Shown here: one piece after another, positions 714-22,045 of the stretch
Layout: each line of letters begins with the position of its first letter
Numbering within the stretch: position 1 is the first letter of the stretch
From: Pavona decussata
Taxonomy: Eukaryota
Reading direction: 5' to 3'
Assembly (NCBI GenBank): GCA_977016875.1
Contig: CDRNST010000015.1
Span: 3,038,001-3,102,000, forward strand
DNA length: 64,000 nt
The notes under the pieces: model-generated
Database searches by the model: none
What the model was told of the DNA's origin: nothing
Seen by the model: only the letters and a program-made list of their open reading frames with translations
Made by a program: the position numbers and the translations under genes

Positions 714-3700
714 CTAGAAAATTCAAAGGAATATTTGACATTTTTAATTTTCATTCAAATGGATATGTTGGTTGTCAATGAAAGACCGGATGAACCTTGA
801 TAAAAAAAATTATAAAAATTTATAATAATAAAACTTTTAAAACCATATCTGTTACTGTTCCAGTAACTGTTAGGGTAATCAAATGAACTGAAGCAAGTAA
901 TGTTTATAAAGAATTTACTTTACCTAGGTTATTCCCTCAGGGAAAAGTTTATCTGTGGAAGACTTTTACAATAACATTAGGAGTGCTTTAATTTTGCTTG
1001 TTTGTTTCTTTCAGTTTATTACCCTACACATGACTGTAAAAATTGAAAATGCTTGGTTTTAAAAAGTTTTAGGATTGTTGTTTAAATTAATATACACCTA
1101 AACTTTAAATAAATTAGACTTTATCAGAGCTGTTATAATTATTATCACTTTAACTTGCAAACTTTGGAAGGAAGTAGTTAAATCGAGAACATAAGAGAGA
1201 AGAGAAGAGAAAACAAGCAAGATCGATCAGGTATATACTTACTGTAATCTTCATAGGCTTTTTTTATCATCCATTTGTTATTATCATCTTTGTGAGAGTA
1301 GCAAGTTACCTAAAAGATTAGTTTCCATTGATTTAAAAAACATTCATTTGATGGTATATGGTGCAAATTCCATTATTTAGTATTACTGCGCCTTTCAATA
1401 ACACGATTCATTGTTAAGATTCAGCCAACTGTTACGCATTTCACTGCTGTCAAAAGAAAGGTCATGTTTGTGCAATGCGTCTGGCAGATTTTTGTCCACT
1501 TTCTTGTCGGTTTCTCTATTCTTGTGGTCAGCCAGTTATTGCCATAGTGATAATTGACAGCAGTAAAACACACAGTCAAATCATTAGTTGGGGTTGAATT
1601 TCAGAGTCTACAGGTATGTTATTGAAAGGTGCAGTAAACCATTTATATCTCCAGGTTTAAAATAATACCATTACACTTCTTCTAATGTACATAGGCCACT
1701 CATCAAGATTCATATCCTAGGTAGCAGTATGCAGGATTTTTACTGACTTAATAAAGATTAGATTAGATGTAGAATGATGTAGATGTTTGTCATATGAACC
1801 AAGTTTAATGGTCTAGCTCCCACAAGTCCCCTATAGCTCAGTGGTCAAGCATCTGGACTAGGTAATGGTAGGTCATGGGTTTGACTCGTGCAAGGAACAA
1901 TTGAATTTTTCTTCCAAGTATGCCTGCATCACTGAATGATAAAAGAAGCAATGATCAGAACTGAGACACACTGGTGTTGAGCATGCCGAGCAGGATCTGA
2001 GCAGAATTTATATGAGTCTCTGTCATCCTTATCAACTTAGTCCCAAATATCATGATGCACAATTCTGATCTCCTCATTATTCTCATTTAAGTTATTAATT
2101 TTCTTATTGCACTAGTAAGGAGAATTCATTTGAAAATCAAGAGATTTTAACCAACCGCATTGCAAATAATATTATTGGCTATGTATGTATGCTATATTTT
2201 TAGAGGTTACTTTACTTTTTCTTTCAGTTCATTTTGAAGCCATCCATTGTGATTGAAAACTGGTAACTGTTAAGTAGAGGATCGTCTTCGAAAAGCTCTG
2301 GTGATCAGATTTTGCTAAGATCTCCAGCCATTATATGAATCTAGGTAACACTTACAAAACTCATGTAAAGGTGATGGCAAATAAAGAAAAAAATCAGATT
2401 TTATATGGTGATGAACTTCTTTGCTCTCATGACCTGACTGTCTGATCAATATTGTAATGAGAAAATAGATTCCAGTCACTAGTAGGGCTTAACAGGATAA
2501 GCAACTGTGCCATCAGTGCCAAATAGGGGGACACATGTACAAGAGCCTGAGATGATTGTAATGATCACAGAGACATTCTCCTTACCTGCTGTTGCTCAGG
2601 GGGGTGTTCCTTGGGGTACAGATGTGAGTGCGAGTGCAAGAGTGCTCCTCCAGCTCTGTGGTTCTTTAGCGTCACTACTGAGCCAAAAGCCAAGTCTAGG
2701 GAAATAAACATTTCAAACAGAAAATATTGAAATAGATGTATTTACTAAGTTTCTCAGTGTCAGATTTTATTATTGAAGTAGACAGCTGCCTGAGAAGGAT
2801 TTAAGTGAAAATAAAGAAAATACACAGCTACTTTAGTTAAAACAGCAGGCTGAGCCTGGCTAGTAAAATGAGAAACTGATTATTAATAAGTGCTTATGAC
2901 AGACTTTTAAACGAAGGCATGGGGCATACATGTAACAGTCAGCAATAAAGTTGCAAGACACAGACTTTGAGGCAGTGATGCCGATGGTTATTGAAAGATA
3001 AAATAAACAACTAATTAATAAGCAATTTATTAATGATGGAGTGAGTTTAGGGTGAAGTGCTTTGTTTCAAGATCAGAAAAATCTTGGCCAAGGATATGAC
3101 TAAATTGGACATTCTGTTTAAATGTTAATTATTTGAAAGTTAGAGTGACTTTCCTGTTTGGATACAAACCTGCAGGCACAACATTCTTGTAGAGAGCATT
3201 TCCTTTCAGTGTTGACTGAAAAGCTGAACTGAAAAATCCATCTCCTGGGCCACTGAGACAATTAAACAATGAAAATAAGATTCCCTAACTTGTGCTTAAG
3301 ACAACTGTTTACAAGTTACAGTTGAATAATAGTTGAATTGTAATTAAATTACACTTGGAAAGCCTGTTACAGCAACTTTGTCAACTCCTAAAAACATGTT
3401 TGTGAAAAGATATTGTTCATATTCTACAACTACAACTTCTATCCAGATCATTGCAGATAATTTTTCCTCCAATTTTCCTCAATTTTCCTCCTTACACATA
3501 CTTAAAATAAAAGGTTCATTTGACATATTATAAATTTATTGTAATAATTATCACACAGAATTAAGAACCTTTATTTAATGCATGCACTGTGTCAAAATTC
3601 AAATCATTTTGTGTTCAACGTATCCTGAATTGCACAATGAATGCAATCAACTGTCAATTATGGAACCAAAAAATAATGCAGATTTCAAAGAGTGATTTCA

Positions 3701-6700: not shown

Positions 6701-9700
6701 TGCTTAATGGCTGTCAAACTTCAAATACATGTTTGGTGGTAAAACACATCATGTCTGGCACCCTATCTGAACATGTTTTTTTGTCTTATGTCCACGCTTA
6801 GATGCAACCGATGGTATTAAGATGCCTAACCCATGTCAGAAGCTGTCCATTGGGAGAGATTCAACTATACTTTACATGTATTTTTAATAATTATCTAGCT
6901 GATTTCTTTAAAATAGGCCTGCCTGAGTCATGCTTCTTTGAGAGTGTGGTACAAATCTTTCTTTGTCTGGTAGCAAAAAAAAATTATGATAAAAGTGATG
7001 ACAGTTTCCTATTACTGATTTCATTTCTTCAAACATAATATAGTGTGATTAAATTAGTGACAGGTGTGAGTTTAATTATAATTTAATTAATGTCAAACAG
7101 AAGATAACCAACCAGTGAAAGAGTAAGATCTCCTAGAATGTCCCATAAGTTCATGACTGTGGTGATACCAGCCCAAAGGATCACAAACAGACCAACCCAC
7201 TTGCAGCTAATGGAGAGGAGATTCACAATCACACCATTAGTAATATTCTTTATGTCTTATCAAGGCTTACCATTAACTCCGGAATGACACAACAGATACA
7301 CTAACTCTGATCTGGGACTCTAATGTTCACTTTAACACAATTTTATCTTCTGTGAATGTCGCAGCATCTACATGAAGGGGCCACTGACTCACAGTGCCCA
7401 TCCGCTTGGAGGGACAATGTACCTCACCAAAGTGCAGGGGATGGGGTAAGCTCCAGTTTGAACACTGCTGGTAAGAGTTGGATGGTTTCTGAGGCCTCTA
7501 GGGGCATGTGAAGCTCCTTGATAATACAAACTAACACAGCAACACATCCCAGGATGGTCCTCAAGAACTTGTCACATTCATAATGGTCAGATTATTGGTG
7601 CTTCAAGACTACACAAGGGTGACTTTGTGATCTGAATTTGGCTTTCATTTTGAAATTTGAAAAACCAGTTTGATTTTCATTCTCCCTTGCTTCAGGTTAT
7701 ATGACTAGGAATCTTAGTTTGTAAAATGTGTTGGAGATACATGACAAATTATCACTCCTGCCTAAAAGGCACTGCAACCAGTTGAAAGCATAAGTTGCAG
7801 CAACTCTAACACCAACCTAAATGCACAAGATAAAGACATTCCTGAAGCAGTCATCCAGGCCCACCAATGAAAACTGTATGGGCTAGAGAATAAGACAATA
7901 GAGATGAAGTTAACTTCAATGGAAAAAAAAGATTGGCCAAACCTGGACTTACTTACTAGAGAAAACATAAAAACGAAATCTCTTATTATTATGCCCCCCA
8001 CCCCCCACCCCCGCAGCATTCAAATTGATAGCCTCTCGTGTGACAGTGCTATAAATTAAGATGATGGCATCAAAAATAACATAAAATTTGTGCAATAAGG
8101 GGATTTGATTCATCACTTATGTCAGAAATTGTAGGCACAATAAACATTTCAGGTGTCAGGATATCATCCCATGTTGCAGATTTCAAATTACGAAACAGTT
8201 TTGGATGTACCTCTACATGCCTTCGAAGTTTCATTGGCATAGCTTTAATACTCATGAAGATACAAAGAGGGATGCAATGTGTCTCCCCCCTCCCCCTCTC
8301 TCCACTACCACTCATATCCTGGCCCAGGCTAAACAACATAATATTATATTAAGCTATTGGAATACTTACACATTTCTGCAGTTTTGAAACTTGGTAAAAC
8401 AGTACGTTGACAACATAATATAAAACATGAGAATTGGATCCAGAAGAATGTACTGTGATATAGTTATACATCCATGATCTGAAACAAAAAATGCAAAAGT
8501 GTACTCTGAACTGAGTTTTGACAATAACCTTGTCCTAGTGAATTAGTGTGTACACGTCATAAGGAAGTTGGACCATTTATCAGCGTGAGAATGTTTCAAG
8601 ATCTCAAAGCCTATGTTTTTAAACAAAAAATACAAATACAAATGCTACCACATCAGCGTTGCTGAACTTTTAATCGTGTTTAAATAAATGCTGTTATTAC
8701 TACATGTACAACATTAATATTGACTCAACTTACCAAAAACAATAAATGCTGTGGCTAGGATAGCAGCCCCAGTGGACTTGGTGAGTTCCCACACTGTGAG
8801 ATAAGCAAGGGGCACACACAGGGCACCTAATGTTGCACAGAACTACCAACACAATAAAAGCACTGTTAATTAAGGTTACTACACACATTTGTATATATAA
8901 TAAATAAATTAACTTTGTTTAATGAGGGTGACACTTAGCAGTCTGTTACGACTGACAAACCTGTGGCCCTCAGATTCCGGATCGAATTGGAATTTGGAAA
9001 TGTTGGTTTCTGAGGAGAGGGGAAAACCTGACAACCTGGAGAAAAACCTCTCAGAGCAAGGACAAGAACCAACAACAAACTCAACCCACATATGACACCA
9101 AGTCCGGGAATTGAACCCGGGCCACATTGGTGGGAGGCAAGTGCTCTCACCACTGCGCCACTCCTGCTCCCCATATCCCTATTGGTCTCACACATTTGTA
9201 ATATTCTGCTTTCTAACTGAGATACAAAAATTAATTTATTTCTGCATTATTAAATTTAATACTGACAATAATAATTCAATGTGAAATAATTTCTAGGGGC
9301 CCCAGGGAGCTCATTTGGAGAGCGGGGCTTGTTTCAGAAGGGTATTTTAAATCACAAATTTCCAAGAGAACTCAATTTAATTTTACAACATTTTTGTATG
9401 ACATGTAGAACAATGATTCACAATTGAGTTGAAGGGTACTACTGTTCTATAGCTTAATTTACAGTGTACAATTTGTCTTCCCTAATGTAGCCTGTGAGCA
9501 GGCTCCCAAGTGGGGTATGGGGCGAAGACAAAAATCGAGCTCCCTTTGGCCTATACCCCGCTTTGAAGCCTGCTCACAGGCTATCCCTAAATATAACTGA
9601 CATACCAACTTTTGGATATTTTCCACTAACAACTTATTGTCAACATGTCCTGGTTGGGTGGAAATTGAGATTTTGCATCATCTACTATTAATTTTCCTAC

Positions 9701-12700
9701 TGCTCTAGAGCATTTTCTGTATTCTGTTTCTATAACAAAGTCATTTTGACTCAACATATTTTTGCAAACTTTAATAAAGATGGATCTTCATTCAAGCATA
9801 AATAGATGTAAGTTATAAACTTACCAATCTCATTCCTACATAGCTGTGCTCTCCATACTGATCTCCAGGTTTGTCAAATGGAAACGAACCATTGTAACCA
9901 CTTAAATATCCTGCAAATGCTATTGACATCTGTTGCACAGAGAATGTAGAAAAGAGGGTTTAAAACAATAAAATAAAGGCATATGTCTTGTGGGGGTACA
10001 CAGTGTTCCAGATAACTTTCAAAATCCGAGAGTCAACGAACAATTTTTGAGGGTTCAATACAGGTGTAGCTCTGGTTCTCTCTAAATCTTCTTAAGTTTG
10101 CCATTCATTTTGTTGGGTCAGGAAGCCAGGCTTCTTGGGTTTTTGACCTGAGACCCCTCTCTTATCTGGAACACTGGTATAGGTAGTGTAGTGGTTAGCA
10201 CATTAGACTTTTCTTCAAACTTTCAATACAAGATCGGTGGGTCTGATGGTTCAAGGCTAGGCTGATCTCTGCATTACAACTGACAATGCATAGGCCAACC
10301 TACAACTGTAGCCTTGTACCGCTGGACCCTCACATTGTCCTTCTCCCCCTCCCCCTCCCCTGTTGTAAATGGTACTGGTGATAAAATGTTAGGGTAACCT
10401 TACAGTGTACAAGCCTTGAGCACCATCCAGGGAGGCTTGAAGCATGAAGCTTGGGCAGTGTCAGGGCTATCTAGGACTGAAGTGAGACTCTCACTATTAC
10501 AGGACTTCTGATAGGGTGCGGAAAAATTTTGGAAATTATGCGGCACTTTTGAGTCTCATTATGCGGCAAAAAGGTCTATTATGCGGCAAATAATGCGATT
10601 TCATTTTAGCTAATTTAAGCTTGTTTTATTAGGTCTAAGAGGAGCACAATCCATTTTTTGCTGTTCAAGAGGCAATTATATTAGAGCCAGAGAAATGAAG
10701 AAACAGCTGAAATAAATTATTTGTTGCCTCATTTCAAATTATTGAAAATCAGATATTGCTAATTTGGTCAAGTCAGCGTTTGTTGCTTCCCACCAGCATT
10801 TTTTTTCTGTGTTCCGCTTGTGTGACTCAGCTTCAAGGTCACAAACGTTCGAAGATGATCAACCACTATGTTGCACAAAGAGCAACAGACCATCGTCAAC
10901 ATGAAACGTTCCTTCAGGGTACTTTTTTGCCCTGTCTTTCACCGAAACATTTACAGGAAAGTGCGATCTTTTTCTCTCCTGCGAAGAAGTGCTTAGTGTA
11001 ACAAACTTATCCATAATGAGGATGTTTGTTTCAATAATTATTAAAACAAAATAACTACATATTGCAAGCGACTATCGAGCAGTTTACATCGTAAGTATGA
11101 AGGGATCAAATGACATCTTAACAATATATCAATGATTGTGATTGGTGTATTTACATAAAAGGATTGTTTATTCCGTGTCAATGATCACTCGCTTAATATT
11201 GAAAACCAGCACCAGGTCCCCAACATGTAAAATGAAGCATAGAACGCCTGTTTGTTCACTTGTTCAATGAACGAACGCTTCCAGGTGATTTTTGACGCCT
11301 TTTGAAAGAAAAAACTCCTTGAGATAATGTTGAATTAATAAATTATCAGAGAACTTGACATTAAGTGAGATTTTTGCTTTTTTTTTTTCTTTAATTGTGT
11401 GATTTTGTACAAATTCTGCGATTTTTCATGAATTATGCGATTTGTTGCGATTTTAGGTCAATTATGCGAAATCGCAACATCGCATAATACCAGAAGCCCT
11501 GACTATAAGGCAACTTTTTGTTTACCTTAGCTAACGGTGGGTGAACATCGAAGAAGAACTCTCCCTTAATGTACCAATTTGCATGCTTTCCAAAATGAGT
11601 TTCATCCCAACTGCAAGAAGAATACAACAGAGTTTGCACCTGTTTACCTTGGCTAATGGTGGATGAACATCAAAGAAGAACTCCCCCTTAAGGTAAAAAT
11701 TGGCATGTTTTCCAAAATGTGTCTCATCCCAGCTGCAAGTACACAACAATATTAGCACAAAAATTGCCTTCACATACATTTTCCCTTTCAGACTTACATG
11801 TATAGACTGAGTCAAATTTAAGATAAAAATTTGGCTGCTCCCAATTTCTTTCTTATTCACTTTTTGATGGGAGCCCACCCCACAATATTATATCACAAAA
11901 TCTCAATACTCAAACAATCACAGGAAAAAAACTGCTTGAGTCTACAAAAGTTCGAGTTATCAGGAGTAAAGGTTTGTTAGTTACTTTATAATTTGAAATG
12001 AAAGGCAATTTTTGCCCCCAGGATGAGTGTTGTCCAGGGATAAAAAAAGCTGTTTCATTTACGTAAATACATGTAGCTTCATCACAGGATTCCAAAACTA
12101 AGACTTTAGTTAGTAATCTTGCGCAAGATGAATTTCATCAAAAGAAGACTGCTAAATACTCTCTGTCAAAGATGAGAAAAACACAAAACATTATAAACTG
12201 GCTGAATGCTGTTTTGTTATATATACAGTGTATTTGCTGTAAACACTTTTTTCCCTTACTGATGTATTTTCCTCTCCCAAGCCTTATTTAATTAGCAGAG
12301 CTCTATAATCAGTTTTATAAATTCTACTTCCCCCCATTTTAGTAACTGCACATAGGTAGTGGCCAACACAAAAGCCTTGCTCCTTTGGCCACTATGCACT
12401 TCTTCCCTAGAAGGTAAAACTACTTAAATATAATGCTCTGCAAGTTTTTTTTCTTACCATAAAAATATATTGTATTTCGAATAAGTGTGAATAAAAATTG
12501 AATTGAATTGAATTGAATTGTGGTTCTTTGGGCTAAAATGTTAATTACTGCTCCAAATAATCATAATTGCAATTCGAAATTAAACAATGTTTAAGATTAA
12601 TATTATTGAAAGTTTTATCCCTAGCAGGGAGACTACATGGACTTGTTTGTCGCATTTCATCCTAGGATAGGGCTAAAATGTTAATTACTGCTCCAAATAA

Positions 12701-15700
12701 TCATAATTGCAATTCAAAATTGAACAATGTTTAAAATTAATATTATTGAAAGTCTTATCCCTGGCAGGGAGACTACATGGACTTGTTTGTCGTGTTTCAT
12801 CCTAGGATGACATTTCATCCCAGTGGTTTGGACACCGGGATTAAATCATCCTTGGATGAGCACATGAAACTTATCTAGTCTCAGGACAAGATCTTAGCTG
12901 GCCCCCATCAATAAGATGATGGTTAGCTTCTCTAGCTTCTGGACGTGAGTTGTTTTGTACAAGATGAGGCCTATTCTCAGGTGAAGCTGTGATCACTCTT
13001 GTACACAAGAGAAAGCCTTAATTCCTCGCAAAGCGAGGGCCGAAGGCCCGAGTGTAGCGAGGTTAATAAATTTGTCGGGCCGAAGGCCGCGCTCGGGAGC
13101 CAAGCCGTGCGAATTCGAGCCGAACATATATTTATATATATGTATGTTTATATATTTCCGTGAAGGTGTCCGTGCTGCAGTTGCCTGGCAACAGTGCGCA
13201 AACAAAGTATGAATGACGACAGACTGTCTGGCGTTGTCTGAAAAAAATTTGCATACATCGGAAAAAATATGCGTGCATGATCAAATTTCAACTGCAATGT
13301 TCATCAATATTCACTGGATACAGAACTATCTCTCCAGAATCTTTTCCCTTTCTTTTAGAAATCTTTTTTGTGAAAGATTGAATTGAAGAAATTATACGTT
13401 TTGTGGCCGCGGTAAAATAATTTTCCGTGGGAAATAAATTCATCGAACACGACAGCGCTGCACGCCTGTTGTACATTACGTCGCGTCAGAAATAGATTTT
13501 CAACCGCAGAATGACGTCAGACTGTCTGGCGTCGTGTGGAGCAAAATTTGCATACGTCGGAAAAAATATGCGTGCATGATCAAATTTCAACTGCAATGTT
13601 CATCAATATTCACTGGATACAGAACTATCTCTCCAGAATATTTTCCCTTTCTTTTAGAAATCTTTTTTGTGAAAGATTGCATTGAAGAAATTACACGTTT
13701 GTGGCCGCGCTAAAATAATTTTCCGTTGGAAATAAATTCATCGAACACGACAGCGCTGCACGCCCGTTGTAGATTACGTCGCGTCAGAAATAGATTTTCA
13801 ACCGCAAACTAGCCTGTGGAACTAACAAAAGACCATGCTCATAAAAAAAATTCCTATGCCCCTTTTAATCTCCTCATTTGATGCTACAGTACGAGTAAAG
13901 AGGGTTTTCCACCCAGCCCCAGCTTCGCGAGGTTTTGCGAGTCACGTATTTCTAGTTAGTTACATGTAGTAACAGGGCTTTCCATGCAAACTATCATAGT
14001 GGCACCATGAAGATTCATAGCTATCTTGACATTTTCAATGTGTAACACATCACTGATTTAGATGGCTGATGAAGGAAAAATGACTTATATGCTATAAGTA
14101 TTTTGAAACAAAAAGTATCAAATAATTGTAAAGAAATTAGAAAAATTTACATCAAAACATGTGGATCTACAAGCTACAGTTGTTAGTGTCAACAAGGAAG
14201 AGAGGCAAAGTGCAGTAGGGTTGCAGTACCAGCTAAGTAAACAGACCACCAAAACACTTGAATGCTTCGGTAAAGCTAACAACAGGTGGTTGTGTTTATA
14301 GAAAGGTGGGTAGAACGTTCTTGAAATTTAAGCTTACATTGGCCATTCAAATCTGGGCAGAAAACAAGAGACCGGATTATCCTACAAAAATAACAAAATA
14401 TATTTTGCAGATAATTTTACTGATTGATGGACTAGGCTAAGAAAAACACAAAGTTATTCCCATCAAAATTGCATTTGATCAATAAACCGCCGAGAACTGG
14501 TTAATTTGCATGGCGTCTAGAAACTACGGCTATCAGCTTCGTTAGTTTAAGATAAGGAAATAATTATAAAAGACGTTTTTCTGCTTCGTCCTTCATGATC
14601 CAGTATTGAAATATTGTAAAATTTGTCTCATTGAAATAAACCAAAACTTGGTTTTAAAACAATGATAACAATCCTCGTTTTTTTCAATTTAATCAGATGG
14701 CTCTGGATTGTATAAAGCTTATATAAATTCAAATCAGTTTCAAAATGGTGTCACAGTTGCTACACAACCATGCAAACATAACAAACTGCAAACTATATCT
14801 CCATATTTAATAAAGCCCTGGAAATTCTGAAATATCACAGTCTGCAACTTCGATGATGTCAAGTACAAATTTGTCTTCTAGCCTTCCAATCGATGGCCAA
14901 AACTCAATCAAGATGTGAAATATTTTGCAGAAATTGACATGCATACATGTAAGCTTAATTAAGCTTCGCATCAGACGTTCAAACCACTTGCAGGTCAACG
15001 TTTTGCCATCCAAACCGCTATTCTTTGAAAGAACCTTACCATATATGAGTCGGTTCGTCGATTCCGTAAAACCTTGTGGCAATAGTCAGTAGTAATAGGC
15101 CTCCAAAAGCTCCAAGCCGGCCGAAAACCTTGGGGTTCCCTTTCACCACTTCGTACGATGTCGCCATACTTGATCGAGATCCGTCTTTATTCGCTCGCGT
15201 TCTTTTCGTAGAAGATGGCATTTCGGACTCACTATCACTGTGTTTATCCTGCTTTTTCGTTCCTACTCCTTTTCGTGGTGTCATGATTATAATTTTAAGT
15301 TATTTCGCGGAGCTTTTCTCGTAAATCTTCCTTGCCGTGCAGCGCCCGCGTGCAGCTTTCGAACGGACGCTCTCGGCCCAGACCCTCCACTCCCAATGAT
15401 TCGCTCTGACGAAGGCCAAACGCGCGAAACGTCGGCATATTTGGTTAGCACTCGAATCTAGTCTGGATCTCTTTACAGAGGCAAAATTCATACCTTCAGT
15501 TATCAACTCTGTCGGCGAAACCAAACATTCGTTTCTAATCCCCAATGACCGAGCACCGCAGTTTCTTTAGAGACCATTAAACCCCCTTTTCCTCAACTTC
15601 TATGGCCGGGCTATACACCGTATTCACAAATGGCGGATGCGCGGGAAAAAAACTGGCACTAGGCATCAAAACGAGGCGTTTTAGGATAAACAAAAAATAA

Positions 15701-18700
15701 TTTGCGTGCGAGTACAAGTTCACAGAGAGACTATTTAGCTGATAAGCTCCTAAACAGCAAGTTTTTCAGATCGCTGGTTTTATTCCGAACGAGAGTGGTC
15801 TAGTGTTTCTTGGATCGTTTCTTGTTGCAATCGTAAATGCAAAATAGACAATCACGGAAACAAATCGGTTAGAGTTTTTGTTTCCGAAGGATTCAGCTTT
15901 CGAGCGCGGACGATAGAGATACAATGTACTACAGAAGTTTGTTTGGTATGTCTTTCGGAATCCGAAGGTAAGATAGGTCTTGAAGGAAACAAAATGAACA
16001 TACAAAAGGATGCATTTCTAACGAGAGTCGCGTGATCAACTTCGTATCGGACGTTGGCGTTCCGAGCGCAAGAGAGACTACAACCATTTGCCTAAACCGC
16101 TATAATGCCAAGAAAAAAAAAAAGACGAAGACAACAACGAAAAGACGTGAAGGATGTGGAGAGAAACGGCTGGACGAATAATTTAAAAAGAAGCAACAGA
16201 TGAACCAAGACTTGTCTGTTTCGATTTATTTGTATTGTAGCCGTACTGTAAACAACAAGCAGAGAATGCAGTCCCTCAAAATTCATAATTTGTTAAATCA
16301 ATCAAGTCAGCAAAATCCAACCGGCTGTTTAATAATGGAACAAGCTCAGAAGGATCATTTCTTGCCTGAATGAGAAAATTGTATTCCGTGAAACAAGGGC
16401 TAGAGAACACAGCATTGTGGCTTTTTAACCGGCATTTCGGTTGAAATCAATAAAGATTTGCATACTTAATTAGGTAATTTGTCAGAATTAGATTATCGTA
16501 TTTCGCTTTACATTGGGTTCCTAAACTTGCCATTCCTTAACGCATTTGAGAGTGACATTCCTCAATTTCCTTGCAGGATTGTTTTCTTAAAATTGATACC
16601 TTACTTCCAGTAGTTCCTCTTGACTTTGGTAACTGCCACATTTTCAATGACTTGCATGAATCTTGGCCAATCTTGCGATGCATGATATCTTTTTTATTTC
16701 GGGGAAAAAGCGCCTAAAAGGTACCGAAATATTTAAGTCTTGGCTCACATATTGCTTCCTTAGTTAAACTTTTTTTTCAGTAGCTTCCCTCCACCTCCTT
16801 TTGTTTTCGTTTTTTAGGCATTAGAGCTGTTCACAATAGTAGGAGTCGGTTTTTGTAGCTTTTGTGATCGGAACTTCCGATTAGTAATCACCACGCAACC
16901 TTCTTTGGAACTGCGTCCGTTTGTAGATTCATTTTCTTTCCTTCGAAACCTGTTTTAATTCCCTTTCCAAAAAATGCATTGAATAAACCTTTGTGGCTCC
17001 TGCTAGAGTGAAGATCTTTCTAACAACTTTTCATATTTTCTGTAGACATTACACTCGAAGGTTTGAAACAAACAATCTAACTCAGTTTTTTCCTGTGAGT
17101 GTCTAGTTTGCATTTGAGATTGCTAGAAGAAGCCAACCAATAAATAATAAATACTAGAAGTTGAACTCGTTCGGACTAAGTGACCAGAAGGACTCAATTT
17201 TTAGAAAGTCAGCACTTATCGACCCTCTAGAAGCTTACATTCTCTGCATTCACTGGAAATTTTTTTTGTTTATCCTAAAACGCCTCGTTTTGATGCGTAG
17301 TGCCAGTCTTTTCCGCGCGTGTCCGCCATTTGTGAATACGGTGTATAATGACTTTTATTTTCGTTCATTTTTCATTTTTTTTCTTCGTTCAAGTTCATCT
17401 TCTTTTTGAGGTTTGTGTTGCAAACCGAAATATTGGGCTAATTTGTTATAATTTATTTCAGTTGTTCTAGTCACTTTGTTTATTTTTCGCCACCACCGCC
17501 GTTAGGATTAGTCTGCCGTTGCATATGAAATGCTGGATTTTTTCTGTAAACTTTGCGGGAAAGCAGAACAACATGCAGCAGGATAAGGCAGGTAGAAGAT
17601 TTCAAACACTGCCCTCTCTCGGCTGATAAAAAAACTTACGCAATCGTATCATCCTCAAGGCCTATTCATGTGATCCCGATCAACCAGGGATGGCAGGCCC
17701 AGTCGAGAGTCTCGCCTCACTACCCAGCCCGGTCAAAGTACAGCTCGGTAACCGCGCGAAGCGATTCAACTGATTAACGTATAATTGGCCTTTAAAAGTC
17801 TTCGACGCTGATACTGACACTGCCAAGAACTTGGAGCGGTGGAGATGGCAAAACCTCATGTGGACCAGTTGACTGATGATTTCGACAAACTTTTAAGAAT
17901 CGCTTTCAGATTTCCCATATTATGAACAGAAGACACATTTCCCCACTAATTAAACTGGGCCAGCACGGTTAACATGTACTGGCTCATGTGAAGAGTGCCT
18001 TAACTAGAAATGTTTCAGACTTATTTGAGCGCGCACGAATTGAGCGTTAGCTCACTAGCTCCTCTGTTGAAAGAAAGTTCTGAATAAGTGTCACGGGAAT
18101 GATAACTTTTGCCATTGAAATGTTTCGTACGACAAGGCCAAGGTAATTCTGAGTTACAAAATGGTAAACGTCCTTTATCTTTTTTGACATTAATTTTACT
18201 TATTTCCTTAATTTACCGTTACCTTTAACACATACACATCATTAAAAAGGAGGAATGATCACGTCCTCGCCACAGATACAGTCAAACTTGATCTTTCTGA
18301 GAAAGATCATATTTGACCGTATCTCCGGCTAAAGCCAGTTTCAAACAATAAAAATATGACCGTGGCGAAAAAAGCTTCATGCTAGCCATTGTATTATGCT
18401 CAGTTCTAATGATATTTTTTCCGTAAGACGAAAGCCCCGTAGTAGAGCAGTAAAAAAGATTCCCCTTCAGGAATCATCACCTTCGGGCGCGGATCATTTC
18501 GTCCAAGGCGACCCGGCATTGTCGGATTTCACCTTGCAGATGAAATTGCACCAGAAGACCGAGTGACGTTTTTTTTCAGTTCACGCTTTTGAATCAACGC
18601 CAAATGGATTTGCAGTGGTGACTTAAGTTTTAATCACGATCAAATGCGACTTCCCTTCGCCCTAGCATGTGCCATAGAACAAGAAGATGTACAGTCGACT

Positions 18701-20981
18701 CCCGATAACTCGAACCTTCAAGGGAAATTGAAAAAGGTTCGAGTTATCGGGAGTTCGAGTTATCGAGGGTAAAATTATATAGAAAATGACCTGAAAGGAA
18801 AGGAAAATTGGTTCGAGTTAGCGCGAGGTTCGAGTTAGCGAGGGTTCGAGTTATCGGGAGACGACTGTATATAACGAAGCTATCCCTTCTGGATTTTCTC
18901 GGCTACTGAAGACAACAAACATTACAAGCTGGGTGTTTTTGAGGTCACGTGACGAAAACTTAACACGATACCAAACTGCTTGCTAAGTTTCGAGAAAATT
19001 GGAAGCATACTTCCCTTTCAAGTCAAAGTCTTTTGTGTTTAAGGCCTTTCAAGTGAAAGTATGCTAAATTACCAGCAAAGTCAAGCTTATTTTAGTTGGG
19101 TGGTTGTATTTTTCCCATATGGAACATGAAATCCAGATTCAAAATGATATTGAATCTTCGTGCACTAGACTAAAAAAGGAAATCTGATACTCTTGATCAT
19201 CATTGCTTAATGTTTGTTTTGAATTTTGCGTGATATTTATATCTAAGGATCCTCGGTGAAAAAGAAAGACCAATTTTGTCTTTTTAGAAATCTGTTCCAT
19301 ACCAAAAGAGAACTCAACATAAAATTTACCAGTTGTTAACCGTCCTTCGCGTCCGATAAAAAGTGAACTATTCGAAGGTTTTCCCTCATTTCGAAACTCG
19401 CTTGATAGGATTCCAGTCTTGTTGGTTTGGAGCACTGTGCATGTCATAATTTTGGCACACTGAGTTTCAACCATTACGTATACATGACTTGCGGCAAATT
19501 TCCCGTCATAAACTTGAATAGCCCTTTTTCTTGCTATTACGTGTGAGCTGATTCAGCTTGAGACACAATAAAAAAGTAAACGTCGATGGCGATAATCAAG
19601 TTCAAAGATACTATTTCGTGGTAATATTTTATAGAATTTGTCACCTTGCCAACTTCAAGTATTCTTCCACCAGAACACTAGTTTTTCTACACAGAACTGT
19701 TGACGTAAGAGAGGGCAATTTTCACTGTCTTTTTCTCGTTTTGCAGTCTTTTGTGGCGGTCTTTTGACTGTCTTTTGACATTTCAACTGTTTAAACGAGT
19801 CAAACATAATTTATTGTACCCTTTGCTATTCTTATTGTAGATCGCGAGACTAATTTATCAATTGTATTATTGCACCTGGACTTCATTACTAACAGAAGTC
19901 TGAATCGTTACTGGTATTTTTCTATCCTTTTTCGTCTTGAGAGCGAAACTTTTATCTCTACCAGCTTGGCTTAAAAAAAAATTGCTCCTATCTTGTCGTG
20001 TAAGTGCCGATAAAAAGGCATTCAAAGTCTGTCGAGTATTAATTTTTTTAAATGCGCAAACCGGAGGTAGTTGGTGGTAAACTGCTTTGTCTTGTAAGCG
20101 GTATCTTACCACAACGCACTGCGGGAAATTTTTGTAAGGTCATCAGTATAAGAGAAATCTGCAATATTTCGGAATGTTTCAAGGTACAAAGAATACGTTG
20201 AAATGTCATATGCATTATAACAAGACTGCCGCGGGTCTAATGTACCTTTCTGGCACCTAAAACCTAGCCAACCTCATCACGCAGCTGGTTAATAAAACAA
20301 AGCCTTGATCTATGATGAGCCAGGTAACTTTTTGCTAGAAGTAATTCATTAAGAACTTTAAATTTTCAGCATTTTGCGTGTCAAAAACGATCAATGTGGA
20401 CAGCGGAATTAAAAGACGTGTGTTAGGCTTCCTGTTTTATAAACCCTAAAATATTCTAGGTCTGAGAAGAAAAAGTAAGGTCGGTAAGATTATCGGAACT
20501 GTAATAAACCTTTTGTAGTAGACCAATGAATAATTGATACGCCGACTAAAATTAACAGACATTTGCATGGAATATTATGATTATGTACTTACCAGATGTG
20601 CGTCGGAAAGCTCACGTTGACAAATCTCGTGGCAAACGCAAGCCCCACAGCACAAAAGAACGACATCAATTTTATCACCCAAGGAGTTTTGCCATTATTA
20701 ACAACTGACAGCCACTTTGAGACGAGCGATTTATGCTGCTCCTTCCTGCTCGGCGGTTTAGTCTTAAGAACAGCCCTTTTAAGATCGGCTTTAGTTCTGT
20801 TCGGCGCCTTGACGGTCTTTCTGTTCCGAACATCGCCGTTTTGATGCTTTTCATCCTGTACTGGTTTTGTTTCATTCTCCTTTTCGCTCGTCTCTCTGCC
20901 GTTTTCATGTAAATCGTCGTCTTTTTTGACATCGCCGTTTTGTTGGCCATTGTTTTCTTCAGCACTCACTTCCGATCCCAT
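653..20981 (-). CDS. POMT2: Protein O-mannosyltransferase 2, 5' part; multi-exon, continues beyond the left edge of the window
   Basis: Manually spliced GT-AG exons with consistent phases: alt exon 1a 20593-20981 or 1b 15040-15284; alt exon 2a 11648-11732 or 2b 11526-11610; then 9825-9929, 8734-8842, 8370-8478, 7817-7882, 7113-7206, 3851-3957, 3170-3252, 2586-2695, 1243-1309, 653-713. Translation has the POMT2/PMT2 hallmarks [48 protein letters not shown], and the start of the MIR domain ([32 protein letters not shown]). Confidence 0.96.
1243..1309 (-). CDS. POMT2: POMT2 exon 11 ([22 protein letters not shown])
   Basis: tag|...|gtaagt, 67 nt, phase 0-1. Confidence 0.92.
1790..1940 (+). mobile_element. 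Degenerate tRNA-derived repeat/SINE fragment
   Basis: tagctcagtggtcaagc (A box) ... gggtttgactc (B box-like) at about 1834-1887; no intact cloverleaf. Confidence 0.55.
2586..2695 (-). CDS. POMT2: POMT2 exon 10 ([37 protein letters not shown]; start of MIR domain)
   Basis: tag|...|gtaag, 110 nt, phase 1-0. Confidence 0.93.
3170..3252 (-). CDS. POMT2: POMT2 exon 9 ([27 protein letters not shown])
   Basis: cag|...|gtttgt, 83 nt, phase 2-1. Confidence 0.92.
3851..3957 (-). CDS. POMT2: POMT2 exon 8 ([35 protein letters not shown])
   Basis: tag|...|gtaagt, 107 nt, phase 0-2. Confidence 0.92.
4363..4475 (+). repeat. 37-bp tandem repeat x3 (ttcagaaagcacgaaagcacattcgaaagcaccagta)
   Basis: Seen directly; lies in the 5' leader of the THAP ORF. 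Confidence 0.9.
4476..4710 (+). pseudogene. Frameshifted THAP zinc-finger N-terminus of the transposase
   Basis: [28 protein letters not shown] / [34 protein letters not shown]: THAP C..C..W..CSxHF signature, split by a frameshift near 4605. Confidence 0.8.
6260..6814. mobile_element. Tc1/mariner-type MITE with TA TSD, containing a nested hairpin MITE
   Basis: ta|ccgtccgttgcatctaagcgtg ... cacgcttagatgcaaccgatgg|ta. Confidence 0.75.
6320..6479. mobile_element. 160-bp palindromic MITE with TGT...ACA ends and 4-bp TSD (caaa); Ginger-like ends
   Basis: Near-perfect ~65-bp inverted arms; caaa at 6316-6319 and 6480-6483. Confidence 0.75.
7113..7206 (-). CDS. POMT2: POMT2 exon 7 ([31 protein letters not shown])
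   Basis: tag|...|gttggt, 94 nt, phase 2-0. Confidence 0.9.
7817..7882 (-). CDS. POMT2: POMT2 exon 6 ([21 protein letters not shown])
   Basis: tag|...|gttggt, 66 nt, phase 2-2. Confidence 0.88.
   Translation of the reverse strand, partial: PIQFSLVGLDDCFRNVFILCI
8370..8478 (-). CDS. POMT2: POMT2 exon 5 ([36 protein letters not shown])
   Basis: cag|...|gtaagt, 109 nt, phase 1-2. Confidence 0.93.
8734..8842 (-). CDS. POMT2: POMT2 exon 4 ([36 protein letters not shown])
   Basis: tag|...|gtaagt, 109 nt, phase 0-1. Confidence 0.93.
8894..9172 (-). mobile_element. tRNA-derived SINE, near full length
   Basis: Head ggcgcagtggtgagagc...ggttcaattccc, body ccaacatttccaaattccaattcga, (ttta)n tail; 12-bp TSD cacacatttgta at 8882-8893 and 9189-9200. 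Confidence 0.85.
9488..9583. mobile_element. Short TAGCC...GGCTA hairpin MITE
   Basis: TIR tagcctgtgagcaggct / agcctgctcacaggcta; imperfect 9-bp TSD tccctaatg / tccctaaat. Confidence 0.7.
9825..9929 (-). CDS. POMT2: POMT2 exon 3 ([35 protein letters not shown])
   Basis: cag|...|gtaagt, 105 nt, phase 0-0. Confidence 0.93.
10180..10470 (+). mobile_element. Degenerate tRNA-derived SINE
   Basis: ggtagtgtagtggttagc head, ggttcaagg B-box-like, body tgtaaatggtactgg...gggtaacct...catccagggagg. Confidence 0.5.
10500..11501. mobile_element. Non-autonomous hAT-like element ending 24 nt from the exon 2b donor
   Basis: TIR caggacttctgata / taccagaagccctg, repeated subterminal attatgcg motifs; imperfect TSD (actatta / actataa). 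Confidence 0.6.
11526..11610 (-). CDS. POMT2: POMT2 exon 2b (85 nt; [29 protein letters not shown])
   Basis: Acceptor ttcttcttgcag; donor AAG|GTAAAC; phase 2 to 0; 72/85 nt identical to exon 2a. Confidence 0.88.
11648..11732 (-). CDS. POMT2: POMT2 exon 2a (85 nt; [29 protein letters not shown])
   Basis: Acceptor tacttgcag with upstream gctaat branch-like motif; donor AAG|GTAAAC; phase 2 to 0. Confidence 0.9.
12530..12809. repeat. 140-bp tandem duplication x2
   Basis: gggctaaaatgttaattactgctcc... at 12530 and 12670. Confidence 0.9.
13018..13956 (+). mobile_element. Helentron/Helitron-like non-autonomous element with an internal ~298-bp tandem duplication (13211-13807)
   Basis: 5' hairpin cctcgc-aaa-gcgagg, complementary 3' subterminal gcttcgcgagg, terminal ctagt; the internal duplication is seen directly. 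Confidence 0.6.
15040..15284 (-). CDS. POMT2: POMT2 alternative first coding exon 1b (81 codons + 2 nt; short cytosolic tail, TM1, ATRF...PTHI)
   Basis: In-frame TAA 6 codons upstream of the ATG; ends CAT ATA TG|GTAAGG (phase 2); encodes ...[19 protein letters not shown]. Confidence 0.9.
15400..15590 (+). mobile_element. Penelope-like element fragment with a degenerate minimal type I hammerhead ribozyme motif (15403-15436)
   Basis: gct-CTGACGA-aggccaaacgcgc-GAAA-cgTC-ggc, followed by ttatcaactctgtcggcgaaaccaaa...gcaccgcagtttctttaga as recalled for cnidarian Penelope-associated repeats. Confidence 0.6.
15612..17347. mobile_element. 1.7-kb non-autonomous DNA transposon with ~85-bp TIRs, between POMT2 exons 1a and 1b
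   Basis: tatacaccgtattcacaaatggcgga...aaaacgaggcgttttaggataaacaaaaa and its reverse complement at about 17260-17347; superfamily uncertain (Academ-like ends). Confidence 0.8.
18692..18867. mobile_element. pogo/Tigger-like MITE with TA TSD
   Basis: ta|cagtcgactcccgataactcgaacc ... ggttcgagttatcgggagacgactg|ta. Confidence 0.85.
20593..20981 (-). CDS. POMT2: POMT2 alternative first coding exon 1a (129 codons + 2 nt; long cytosolic tail, TM1, ATRF...PTHI)
   Basis: aaacATGg start; ends CAC ATC TG|GTAAGT (phase 2); encodes ...[16 protein letters not shown], matching the POMT2 TM1/loop-1 junction. Confidence 0.9.
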
Positions 20982-22045
20982 GTTTGTTAGATAATCATCG
21001 GCGTAAAAGCGACAAACTTCGGACAGGTTATTTTGGCCGCCAAGCGCGGAAGCAAAGACTATCCACGTCGCGGTTGTCTTTTATTTCATTTAAATTCAAA
21101 ATTACACGTTAACATTAGTTTACGATCACTGTATGATGACATTCCATGGGGATCTCTTTCATGTCTCCATGGTTACTGTGCCAGGCAAGCGTTTGCCCTG
21201 CGCTTTCTATCTTTTTGGGAATACACAGTTTTAATAAGAAGGGTCTGTTGCCATGGCCACGAACGTCCCCATTTTAAAGAAACGAGAAATTCTATAGTTC
21301 GGCAGTCTTTTGAATCAAAATTATTTTGGACAGTTTATTTAGCTTTTTCTGAGACAAGGACCCTCTAAAGGACCACCTTCTTCAAAACTAAGGCCCTGCG
21401 TAAATTTTAAGAGACCTGGTGGAAAATGCTTCTCACCGCTTCTGTTTCTCTAAATTGCCGAGTTTTGTGTTTTTCTTCTTTTCGTTGTTTATTTTAGTAT
21501 TTATTTTTTCTTTTTGACTTTGTTCAGCCGTTTGTCATTTGCCTGCGTTGATCTGTTTTACCTACTCCGACGAATTTCCGGGTTTGTTCGCGCATTTAAT
21601 TATGGGACCGTTTGAAGCGTGCGCACTGGAGGTATAAATGTACAACCTCGTTCCCAGGTTTAACCCTTGTAAATTTATTGGAAGGGGCGCCCCTCCCAAT
21701 TTACAAGGGTTAAACCTCTGGGTCACCCAACGGCTCACTTCCGTGATGGTGGATTATGAGTTTGCGATCGGAAATTCGGATCTTAAGTTGTAAAGAACTT
21801 GAAATCTGCGCTTTTCTTCAGCAAAATTTCTGCTAAAAAATTTCGTTACAATGGAGAACTAATTCCGTTCGTTTTTGAAGGGACAAATACGTTGTTAAAA
21901 ATGTTAAAAAAGGCCAGCAAGAATTTTTCGCATAACCAAAAACAGCTCGTTTATTCAGGGAATAAAATTCTGTTTCCAAAAACCTTTTTGTCAGCTAAAG
22001 CACCCAAACAGATATGAGCTCTCACAAATATGTCTTAAAAGCCCC

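Follow-up and report, generated by a model that had tools for sequence, protein, structure and literature searches.

The question raised by this locus is how many proteins are made from one O-mannosyltransferase gene of the stony coral Pavona decussata that carries two first exons, 1a and 1b, followed by two copies of the second exon, 2a and 2b. The evidence described below points to a coral POMT2 gene in which old first exons, served by two promoters, probably stand next to a young and mutually exclusive pair of second exons, where 2a is the default and 2b most likely is used as well. The locus is a tidy and fairly ordinary case of exon duplication, in which two common routes to N-terminal diversity, alternative first exons and tandem exon duplication, are stacked in one essential enzyme gene.

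Layout of the locus

Exons 1a, 1b, 2a, 2b and 3 were all found at their predicted places on the minus strand of the window, which is the whole 64,000-nucleotide stretch of DNA that was analyzed. The order 1a-1b-2a-2b-constant exons, as read in the earlier note, is correct. The features are listed below in window coordinates, or in contig coordinates where C15 is given; a slash marks an exon boundary or junction.

20981-20593, minus strand: exon 1a, coding part; ATG at 20981; 389 nt (129 codons + 2 nt), phase 2
20593, minus strand: last base of exon 1a at its donor, ..ATCTG/gtaagt
20592-15336, minus strand: intron of the 1a transcript, part upstream of 1b; 5.3 kb
15335-15040, minus strand: exon 1b including its 5' UTR; ATG at 15284; coding part 245 nt (81 codons + 2 nt), phase 2
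15040, minus strand: last base of exon 1b at its donor, ..ATATG/gtaagg
11732-11648, minus strand: exon 2a; 85 nt, phase 2 to 0; acceptor ..ttgcag/, donor AAG/gtaaac
11647-11611, minus strand: spacer between 2a and 2b; 37 nt
11610-11526, minus strand: exon 2b; 85 nt, phase as in 2a; acceptor ..ttgcag/, donor AAG/gtaaac
9929-9825, minus strand: exon 3, the first constant exon; 105 nt, phase 0; RNA junction 11648/9929
~8842-8738, 8479-8390 and 7202-7110, minus strand: in-frame cores of later constant exons (tblastn with POMT2 proteins)
~3933-3850, 3254-3171, 2693-2583 and 1309-1238, minus strand: in-frame cores of further constant exons (tblastn with POMT2 proteins)
C15:3046381-3049737, minus strand: exon-wise matches to Pfam PMT
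C15:3033572-3033862, minus strand, outside the window: match to Pfam PMT_4TMC

The gene extends beyond the left edge of the window, to about C15:3033500; in Pocillopora the orthologous mRNA aligns to 23 exons. The distance between 1a and 1b is 5.3 kb here, compared with 0.7-2.9 kb in the relatives, and repeats have enlarged the intron, among them an inverted pair at about 15610-15885 and 17065-17347, which is 71% identical over 291 nt. A tblastn search of 15336-20592 with POMT2 proteins found no further PMT-like exons. The promoter of 1b must sit within this intron of the 1a transcript. The observed/expected CpG ratio exceeds 1.3 around 15000-16300 and is 1.2-1.7 around 20600-21300.

Identity of the gene

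By its sequence the gene is POMT2 of the coral, an orthologue within the PMT2 subfamily; POMT2 pairs with POMT1 to form the protein O-mannosyltransferase of the ER, an activity that is predicted here. Pfam matched both PMT (PF02366) and PMT_4TMC (PF16192) on exons of one gene. Over 516 aligned residues the translated exons share 57% identity with Elysia POMT2 (tblastn with POMT2 proteins), and the eight exons compared with 'protein O-mannosyl-transferase 2-like' of corals in RefSeq share about 92% with it. Exons 2a and 2b are each matched by Pfam PMT, and both encode WDETHFGK, the invariant DE motif in its PMT2-type WDE context. The best solved match to the exon 2 loop is yeast Pmt2, residues 91-118. 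The MIR domain (PF02815) is present in all full-length relatives; the gene was not flagged in a genome-wide Pfam scan for MIR, and by tblastn the MIR region of POMT2 proteins aligns to the exons L013:8611-8769, L013:9329-9406 and window 2583-2693.

The earlier note stated that PMTs work as dimers, which is established for these enzymes as an obligate association (PMC12705809), and proposed looking for a POMT1/PMT4 orthologue. Such a gene is present. It is a separate second PMT gene of the PMT4/POMT1 type, found on C19 with Pfam, and its loop, FDEVHFGQ, has Pmt4 as its best match.

Similarity searches were run one exon at a time. The matches of a representative search with the MIR exon were for the most part ORF fragments the size of an exon, with no full-length cnidarian protein among them. 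Bilaterians only were among the matches listed for a word search with Elysia POMT2, and Acropora and Nematostella were reached by a word search with a hemichordate POMT2. Exact look-ups with the Acropora millepora and Montipora capricornis proteins gave zero loci. A MAFFT alignment of single exon rows with full-length POMT2 was badly stretched and was set aside as a query.

The two first exons

The encoded cytosolic tail is about 100 residues long in exon 1a, which continues through TM1 to the end ..PTHI(C), and about 50 residues long in exon 1b, which likewise includes TM1. The tails are unrelated. By hhalign (probability 94.7%, E 5.8e-8), homology between 1a and 1b is detectable in the last 30 residues only, where TM1 lies and the lumenal loop begins. 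Both ATGs are preceded by in-frame stops. As each of the two exons has its own start codon and its own 5' splice site, in the same phase 2, and neither has a 3' splice site, a transcript would contain one first exon. The 5' UTR of exon 1a lies upstream of the ATG at 20981.

Each of the nine further stony-coral loci examined, among them L007-L012, Oculina and Pocillopora, keeps both exons intact and in this order. In the seven genomes compared, the start codons and GT donors of both exons are kept in the same phase, the 1a donor as GTNAGT. Sixteen database ORFs are relatives of exon 1a. The dN/dS ratio is 0.16-0.36 for exon 1a and 0.11-0.45 for exon 1b, with dS reaching values above 1 across the first exons; both exons are under purifying selection. 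The arrangement is older than the stony-coral radiation. Nematostella has a long and a short first exon in like order, which suggests that the arrangement may be older still; these two are candidate orthologues of coral 1a and 1b, with just 30 alignable residues.

As an annotation, the arrangement of two first exons is already known in many corals. RefSeq POMT2-like isoforms X1 and X2 of corals and Nematostella have the same two kinds of N-terminus (a long one, MGSE.., and a short one, MTPRKG..) and share the same exon 2; examples are XP_029189886.2 (Acropora millepora X1), XP_073247576.1 (Porites lutea X2) and XP_048585822.1/XP_048585823.1 (Nematostella). Isoform X1, of the 1a type, is 785-801 residues long and isoform X2, of the 1b type, 736-742. 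Both are listed for Acropora, Montipora, Porites, Oculina and Nematostella, and X1 for Pocillopora. The genomic order in these species is as here, a long first exon, a short first exon and exon 2, but their exon 2 is single. No description of the coral isoforms X1 and X2 was found in the literature. A Logan mRNA contig from a related coral (L044; 2,623 nt, one 800-residue ORF) runs from the 5' UTR through 1a into exon 2 and leaves out 1b. Exons 1a and 1b are conserved coding exons, each spliced directly to exon 2. For Pavona decussata itself, conservation and the transcripts of relatives argue that 1a is used.

The duplicated second exon

Either copy of exon 2 encodes (C) and 28 residues of the lumenal loop between TM1 and TM2, with the catalytic DE motif. 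The two copies differ at 12 of 84 codon-aligned bases (86% identity; 9 synonymous and 3 non-synonymous differences) and at 2 of 28 residues, a similarity far above chance (tblastn E ~1e-18). Compared with the yeast Pmt1-Pmt2 and Pmt4 structures (6P25, 9I5K, 9E61), exon 2 corresponds to the TM1-TM2 loop, which holds the invariant DE motif as well as the residues that bind the acceptor, equivalent to ctPmt4 F83, D84 and H87 (PMC12705809). The residue changes from 2a to 2b, F>W and L>I, touch neither the DE motif nor an acceptor-binding residue; they fall at the equivalents of Pmt2 Y102 and L104, which are not among the catalytic or ligand-binding residues listed in that study. That the two proteins would differ only by these changes near the catalytic motif points to fine-tuning or near-neutral redundancy, rather than another subunit. 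The suggestion that one locus could produce distinct subunits is therefore unlikely to hold. The chemistry of O-mannosylation as it is known stays unchanged, and the difference between the 2a and 2b proteins is small.

The spacer measures 37 nt here and 40 nt in L007, and it is conserved with its flanks between the two species. The smallest ordinary introns in the orthologues measure 110-124 nt. The spacer begins with the 2a donor, gtaaac, and also has to accommodate the 2b acceptor, cttgcag, together with its pyrimidine tract and tgcaaac as a candidate branch site; it would therefore not be removable as an intron. For corals this block is inferred from other animals, where a steric-interference rule is described for introns that are too short between exons (PMC5740500, PMC4165533). 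Since 85 leaves a remainder of 1 when divided by 3, inclusion of both copies, or of neither, shifts the frame; retention of the spacer leads into a stop (115-residue ORF). An mRNA would thus contain 2a or 2b, never both. Mutually exclusive pairs separated by short introns have a second safeguard in NMD or frame incompatibility (PMC4165533, PMC5740500). The 85-nt length, the identical phase and the short spacer form the anatomy of a mutually exclusive pair, which makes 2b a candidate partner of 2a. RNA folding of 2a-spacer-2b in both species gave no more structure than in shuffled sequences (z 0.57 and 0.06), and there is accordingly no sign of a docking/selector mechanism.

Exon 2 is doubled in Pavona decussata and L007 only, and is single in the seven other genomes. 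An assembly artefact was rejected, as both copies are also present in L007, an independent assembly of a diverged relative. The 1a/1b pair is found in the nine other coral loci, and the earlier conclusion that two independent duplications took place is upheld; their ages are very different, 1a/1b being old and the exon 2 pair much younger. The two layers can thus be dated apart, the first exons being old and annotated in anthozoans and the exon 2 pair young and private to one coral lineage.

Transcripts of Pavona decussata

RNA contigs from four runs were aligned to 9700-15400, which covers exons 1b, 2a, 2b and 3. The junction 15040/11732, joining 1b to 2a, is present in runs X1 and X7, and the junction 11648/9929, joining 2a to 3, in runs X1, X2 and X7; both match the predicted exon ends exactly. 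The contigs are unbroken across the two junctions, so other combinations are rare or absent in these samples. Contigs of 1b end at 15332 or 15335, 48-51 nt upstream of the ATG and with no upstream junction, which gives 1b a 5' UTR of about 50 nt. No junction of 2b, and none between 2a and 2b, was found among the contigs of the four runs. Scanning JGI metagenome contigs for a spliced junction of exon 1 and exon 2 gave 26 matches, none from coral; three were PMT2-type transcripts of other eukaryotes.

The combination 1b-2a-3 is the sole one among the RNA contigs, which come from three studies. Assembled contigs lose rare or minor isoforms. Of the earlier proposal of up to four isoforms, what stands is that they are possible on paper; the sampled tissues come close to the single-combination pattern that the earlier note would have held against it, in contigs from which rare variants may drop.

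Possible use of exon 2b

By combining the available observations, it is possible to describe how the locus probably works. Two promoters would give transcripts that begin with 1a, encoding the long cytosolic tail, or with 1b, encoding the short and unrelated tail, each with its own TM1, and the two forms may differ in cytosolic interactions, regulation or expression domains. A later tandem duplication of the 85-nt exon 2 would have produced the mutually exclusive 2a and 2b. Exon 2a would serve as the default. As 2b is open, splice-competent and under selection, the most likely case is that few transcripts include it, or that it is used in a stage or tissue other than those sampled.

A less probable reading takes 2b for a tandem duplicate, silent or decaying, that the spliceosome skips every time, in which case only two proteins would be made, 1a or 1b with 2a, and the two-by-two system would be merely apparent. 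It agrees with the finding of 2a alone between 1b and 3, and with the absence of the 2b-type HANWY from all cnidarian proteins inspected, annotated or assembled. The two species also differ at seven positions in 2b and at one in 2a, per 84 nt, so that 2b has changed faster. But six of the seven differences between 2b and its L007 orthologue are synonymous and one is non-synonymous, where neutral decay predicts about 80% non-synonymous changes (P 2e-4 to 4e-3, from 84 nt only), and contigs drop rare variants. The frame, acceptor and donor of 2b are intact in both species, and both share the F>W change, which indicates that 2b was kept long after the duplication. Judged from these 84 nt, exon 2b appears to have been under purifying selection since before the split of the two species.

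It is improbable that the promoter dictates the choice of exon 2, for instance 1a with 2b, to make two coherent and distinct enzymes or subunits; the coupling proposed in the earlier note is unsupported. Such a coupling would fit RNA that contains 1b-2a only while 1a and 2b are both under selection, and a testis-specific form of mammalian POMT2 besides the somatic one, which appears in a title cited in PMC2937224, offers a parallel. However, in seven other genomes one exon 2 serves both 1a and 1b, so 1a does not depend on 2b; the two residues that distinguish 2b from 2a are conservative and lie off the catalytic and acceptor-binding positions; and POMT1, the partner in the heterodimer, has a gene of its own. 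Just as doubtful is a narrower possibility, that 2b occurs in a stage- or tissue-restricted transcript, perhaps from the 1a promoter, with the other tail, the other TM1 and a W-Y-I loop. If true, the active-site loop of this essential glycosyltransferase would have acquired, recently and in nature, a switch between two states that is coupled to the choice of promoter.

That 1a is a separate small gene with one TM, the remnant of a partial gene duplication, is hardly credible: the genomic 1a frame does end at or just past ..HIW in every species, so that ORF callers give a protein of 130-180 residues, but what is conserved after HIW is the GTNAGT donor and not a stop, and in the full-length L044 mRNA, as in the X1 isoforms of RefSeq, the 1a frame continues into exon 2, which refutes the idea for the relatives.

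Comparison with other systems

The preferred reading, old first exons with a young exon 2 pair, has parallels on both levels. Mammalian POMT2 is one gene with somatic and testis-specific forms, according to the title of Lommel, Willer and Strahl (2008, Glycobiology 18:615) as cited in PMC2937224. The coral 1a and 1b forms resemble these in that two forms come from one POMT2 gene, and the two systems are likely of independent origin. In mammals an alternative start reportedly gives sPOMT2 and tPOMT2 their different N-termini. The conservation of 1a and 1b means that POMT2 has needed two cytosolic tails and two TM1 helices throughout stony-coral evolution, and the sea anemone pair and the mammalian forms hint at a general, unexplained requirement.

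The exon 2 pair resembles exons 2/3 of vertebrate alpha-tropomyosin and the pairs in C. elegans let-2, egl-15, gly-5 and gly-6, which are likewise tandem homologous exons of equal length; gly-5 and gly-6 also encode glycosyltransferases, as does POMT2. Both exons of those pairs are documented in mRNA, whereas here only 2a is. With its purifying selection, its short spacer and a second copy so far invisible in RNA, the pair is a natural test case for how a fresh duplicated exon is kept. Of three POMT2 proteins inspected from bilaterians, two have the 2b-type loop, W-Y-I, and the third has Y-Y-I.

Structure and identity of the gene

The duplicated exons are real and precisely located. The minus strand of the window (G000:C15:3038001-3102000, from a 602 Mb genome), whose relatives are stony corals, carries a PMT-family gene. 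When this strand is read with its shared splice phases, the coordinates and the order 1a-1b-2a-2b-constant that the earlier note had proposed are correct.

Exons at the 5' end of the gene
20981-20593, minus strand: exon 1a, ATG at 20981, 389 nt, ending ..CAC ATC TG/gtaagt
15284-15040, minus strand: exon 1b, ATG at 15284, 245 nt, ending ..CAT ATA TG/gtaagg
11732-11648, minus strand: exon 2a, 85 nt, ending AAG/gtaaac
11610-11526, minus strand: exon 2b, 85 nt, ending AAG/gtaaac
9929-9825, minus strand: exon 3, the first constant exon

Both first exons end two bases into a codon, and the first base of 2a or 2b completes it to TGC or TGT (Cys). The gene extends past the left edge of the window, with PMT_4TMC exons at C15:3033572-3033862 and more exons in a further stretch (L013). 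All searches were made exon by exon.

The exons match Pfam PMT and PMT_4TMC, and their alignments give 57% identity to Elysia POMT2 across 516 residues and about 92% to coral RefSeq 'protein O-mannosyl-transferase 2-like'. Exon 2 aligns with residues 91-118 of yeast Pmt2. This part of Pmt2 is the TM1-TM2 loop, in which the invariant DE motif of the catalytic site and residues that bind the acceptor are found (PMC12705809). In animals, POMT1 belongs to the PMT4 family and POMT2 to the PMT2 family, and the active form is a heterodimer of both (PMC12705809; PMC8478517). The earlier note had left the presence of a POMT1/PMT4 orthologue to be checked: a second PMT gene, of POMT1 type, is found on another contig (C19:2494124-2511385), has the loop FDEVHFGQ, and is best matched by Pmt4-type structures. 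The usual pair of PMT genes is thus present, and the suggestion that a single locus supplies two kinds of subunit becomes unnecessary.

The order of genes around POMT2 is kept from Nematostella to corals (window; L007, L009, L011, L012, L042). The upstream neighbours of 1a are a CCDC32-like ORF and a methyltransferase of PrmA/MTS type (window 23533-23835, minus strand, and 24871-25347, plus strand), and a PG_binding_1 (metalloprotease-like) gene lies downstream of POMT2 in Oculina, Pocillopora and Nematostella. Three environmental JGI metagenome/metatranscriptome contigs that matched the junction pattern (L026, L035, L036) hold eukaryotic sequence of PMT2 type that is free of introns (..[13 protein letters not shown]..).

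The alternative first exons

In other assemblies, 16 called ORFs are related to the 130-aa frame of 1a, and every one of them ends ..HIW. Six of these coral loci (L007-L012) were compared, together with Oculina, Nematostella and Pocillopora (L041-L043). An intact 1b sits 1.0-2.9 kb downstream of 1a in every one of the coral loci, and Nematostella has a like-ordered pair 0.7 kb apart. The seven genomes compared (this one and L007-L012) keep the start codons, the phase and the donor sequences, which are GTNAGT in 1a and GTAAG in 1b. Pairwise dN/dS is 0.16-0.36 in 1a and 0.11-0.45 in 1b, over dS values between 0.14 and >1. Homology between 1a and 1b is confined to the last 30 residues, from TM1 through ..P.HI (profile comparison, 94.7%); the cytosolic tails, of about 100 residues in 1a and about 50 in 1b, are unrelated. 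Judged from these 30 residues, the pair of Nematostella may be an orthologue of the coral pair or may have a separate origin.

RefSeq lists two protein isoforms in several taxa, X1 of 1a type with 785-801 aa and X2 of 1b type with 736-742 aa: Acropora millepora, A. muricata and A. palmata; Montipora capricornis and M. foliosa; Porites lutea, with matching models in P. harrisoni and P. evermanni; Oculina patagonica; Pocillopora verrucosa (X1 only among the members listed); and Nematostella vectensis. A Logan contig from a related coral (L044; SRR28002484) holds a complete mRNA in its 2,623 nt. An 81-nt leader colinear with the genomic DNA upstream of 1a is followed by 1a, which skips 1b and runs directly into exon 2, and then by 21 more exons. 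The same 90% protein cluster includes 742-aa 1b-type transcripts. This mRNA, the RefSeq isoforms and the conservation show that 1a is a real alternative first exon; that it forms a separate gene is rejected, as both the mRNA and the X1 isoforms join it to exon 2. The alternative first exons are old, and annotations of other anthozoans already include them. No literature description of these isoforms was found, and the closest published parallel, going by a title cited in PMC2937224, is mammalian POMT2, with one somatic and one testis-specific form.

The gap between 1a and 1b is enlarged by repeats to 5.3 kb in this genome, compared with 0.7-2.9 kb in relatives, partly because of an inverted repeat pair (about 15610-15885 and 17065-17347; 71% identity, 291 nt). 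The two repeats share a short ORF (..[22 protein letters not shown]) and are probably a transposon remnant.

Six residues of the cytosolic tail of 1a, VANAMN (20650-20700), are absent here and present in L007 and in a 93%-identical Logan ORF (P0001), an in-frame 18-nt indel. All 17 aligned ORFs share the N-terminus MGSE[VIM]S of 1a (20964-20981), whose G2 and S6 fit the N-myristoylation consensus; the motif is not universal, since the annotated Acropora X1 has a different start. An acidic serine cluster (DKHSDSESE) is common to 1b tails, and N-x-S/T is frequent directly after TM1 in 1a-type exons.

Age and selection of the exon-2 pair

Searches with tblastn, blastn and nhmmer find exon 2 twice in just two genomes, this one and that of its closest relative L007 (dS about 0.14-0.21), and a single copy in L008, L010, L011, L012 (Porites), Oculina, Pocillopora and Nematostella. 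L009 was left out of this count, its sequence ending before exon 2, which lies beyond the range covered because a full-length LTR-retrotransposon-type ORF (L009 13436-17383, minus strand; 1,315 aa with RT, RNase H and integrase) lengthens the 1b-exon 2 intron. By this distribution the exon-2 pair is young and lineage-specific. As the first-exon pair is far more widespread, there were two independent duplications, as had been proposed, far apart in time.

Between 2a and 2b, 12 of 84 codon-aligned bases differ, 9 of them synonymously; the remaining three produce F>W (TTT>TGG, common to L007) and L>I (this genome only). Comparison with L007 gives one difference in 2a and seven in 2b, six of the seven synonymous. 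A drifting 2b would give about 80% non-synonymous changes, so that the probability of at most one is 2e-4, or 4e-3 at a conservative 70%. The acceptor, donor and spacer are also kept. These mostly synonymous changes and conserved splice signals indicate that 2b was already in use as coding sequence before the two species separated and has been so ever since, though it is unseen in RNA. The W-Y-I of 2b stands at the equivalent place in two of three bilaterian POMT2 proteins inspected; the third, which we take to be vertebrate-like, has Y-Y-I. The two-residue difference spares the DE motif and the equivalents of F83, D84 and H87, the acceptor-binding residues of the Pmt4 structure ctPmt4.

Probable mode of exclusive splicing

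Having a donor only, 1a and 1b are exclusive by construction. Each would have its own promoter, for which the CpG observed/expected ratio of >1.2 around both is weak evidence. The exon-2 copies are separated by a spacer of 37 nt (40 nt in L007), which begins with the 2a donor and must also accommodate the acceptor signals of 2b, from branch site and pyrimidine tract to the AG; the smallest ordinary introns measured in orthologues are 110-124 nt. In vertebrates, a distance below about 50 nt between 5' splice site and branch point blocks splicing, and in C. elegans introns below about 40 nt between mutually exclusive exons, including those of the glycosyltransferase genes gly-5 and gly-6, are never removed (PMC5740500, PMC4165533). 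By analogy, the spacer would block joining of 2a to 2b, as expected of a mutually exclusive pair. The frame is lost if both copies are included, if both are skipped or if the spacer is kept (85 mod 3 = 1; a stop is seen). The exon-2 pair adds an ordinary case of tandem exon duplication that bears the hallmarks of mutually exclusive splicing. The acceptors of 2a and 2b would compete for the donor of exon 1. A branch-site match, CTAAT, is present for 2a, which also stands first; both would fit its dominance. No selector-type RNA structure was found.

Transcripts in this species

RNA contigs of four runs from four studies were mapped onto 9700-15400, a stretch that lies outside exon 1a. Runs X1 (a 4,104-nt contig) and X7 give one contig each, covering exon 3, 2a and 1b to 15332 or 15335, with gaps at 9930-11647 and 11733-15039. 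On the plus strand the gaps are bounded by CT..AC, which reads GT..AG on the strand of the gene; the contigs are therefore spliced RNA. They stop about 50 nt upstream of the 1b ATG, without an upstream junction. A contig of run X2 joins exon 3 to 2a and continues unspliced; the coral metatranscriptome X11 shows no coverage of the gene within this stretch. Since unbroken contigs cross the 1b/2a and 2a/3 junctions and 2b is in no junction among the assembled contigs of the four runs over 9700-15400, 1b-2a-3 is the dominant and perhaps the only form in the sampled material, with the limit that assembly loses minor isoforms. Exon 2b is under selection yet unseen in RNA contigs. A combinatorial use of the two pairs is hypothetical, and the idea that promoter choice is tied to exon-2 choice is not supported; in seven genomes one exon 2 is enough for the 1a/1b pair.

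Intronic stretches at 9990-10180, 10460-11525, 12180-12560 and 12950-14090 are covered by many short RNA contigs, 90-95% alike and of very high summed depth. The same stretches are covered in the coral metatranscriptome, where POMT2 itself gives no signal. These are repeat families that are expressed, and no parts of the POMT2 gene.
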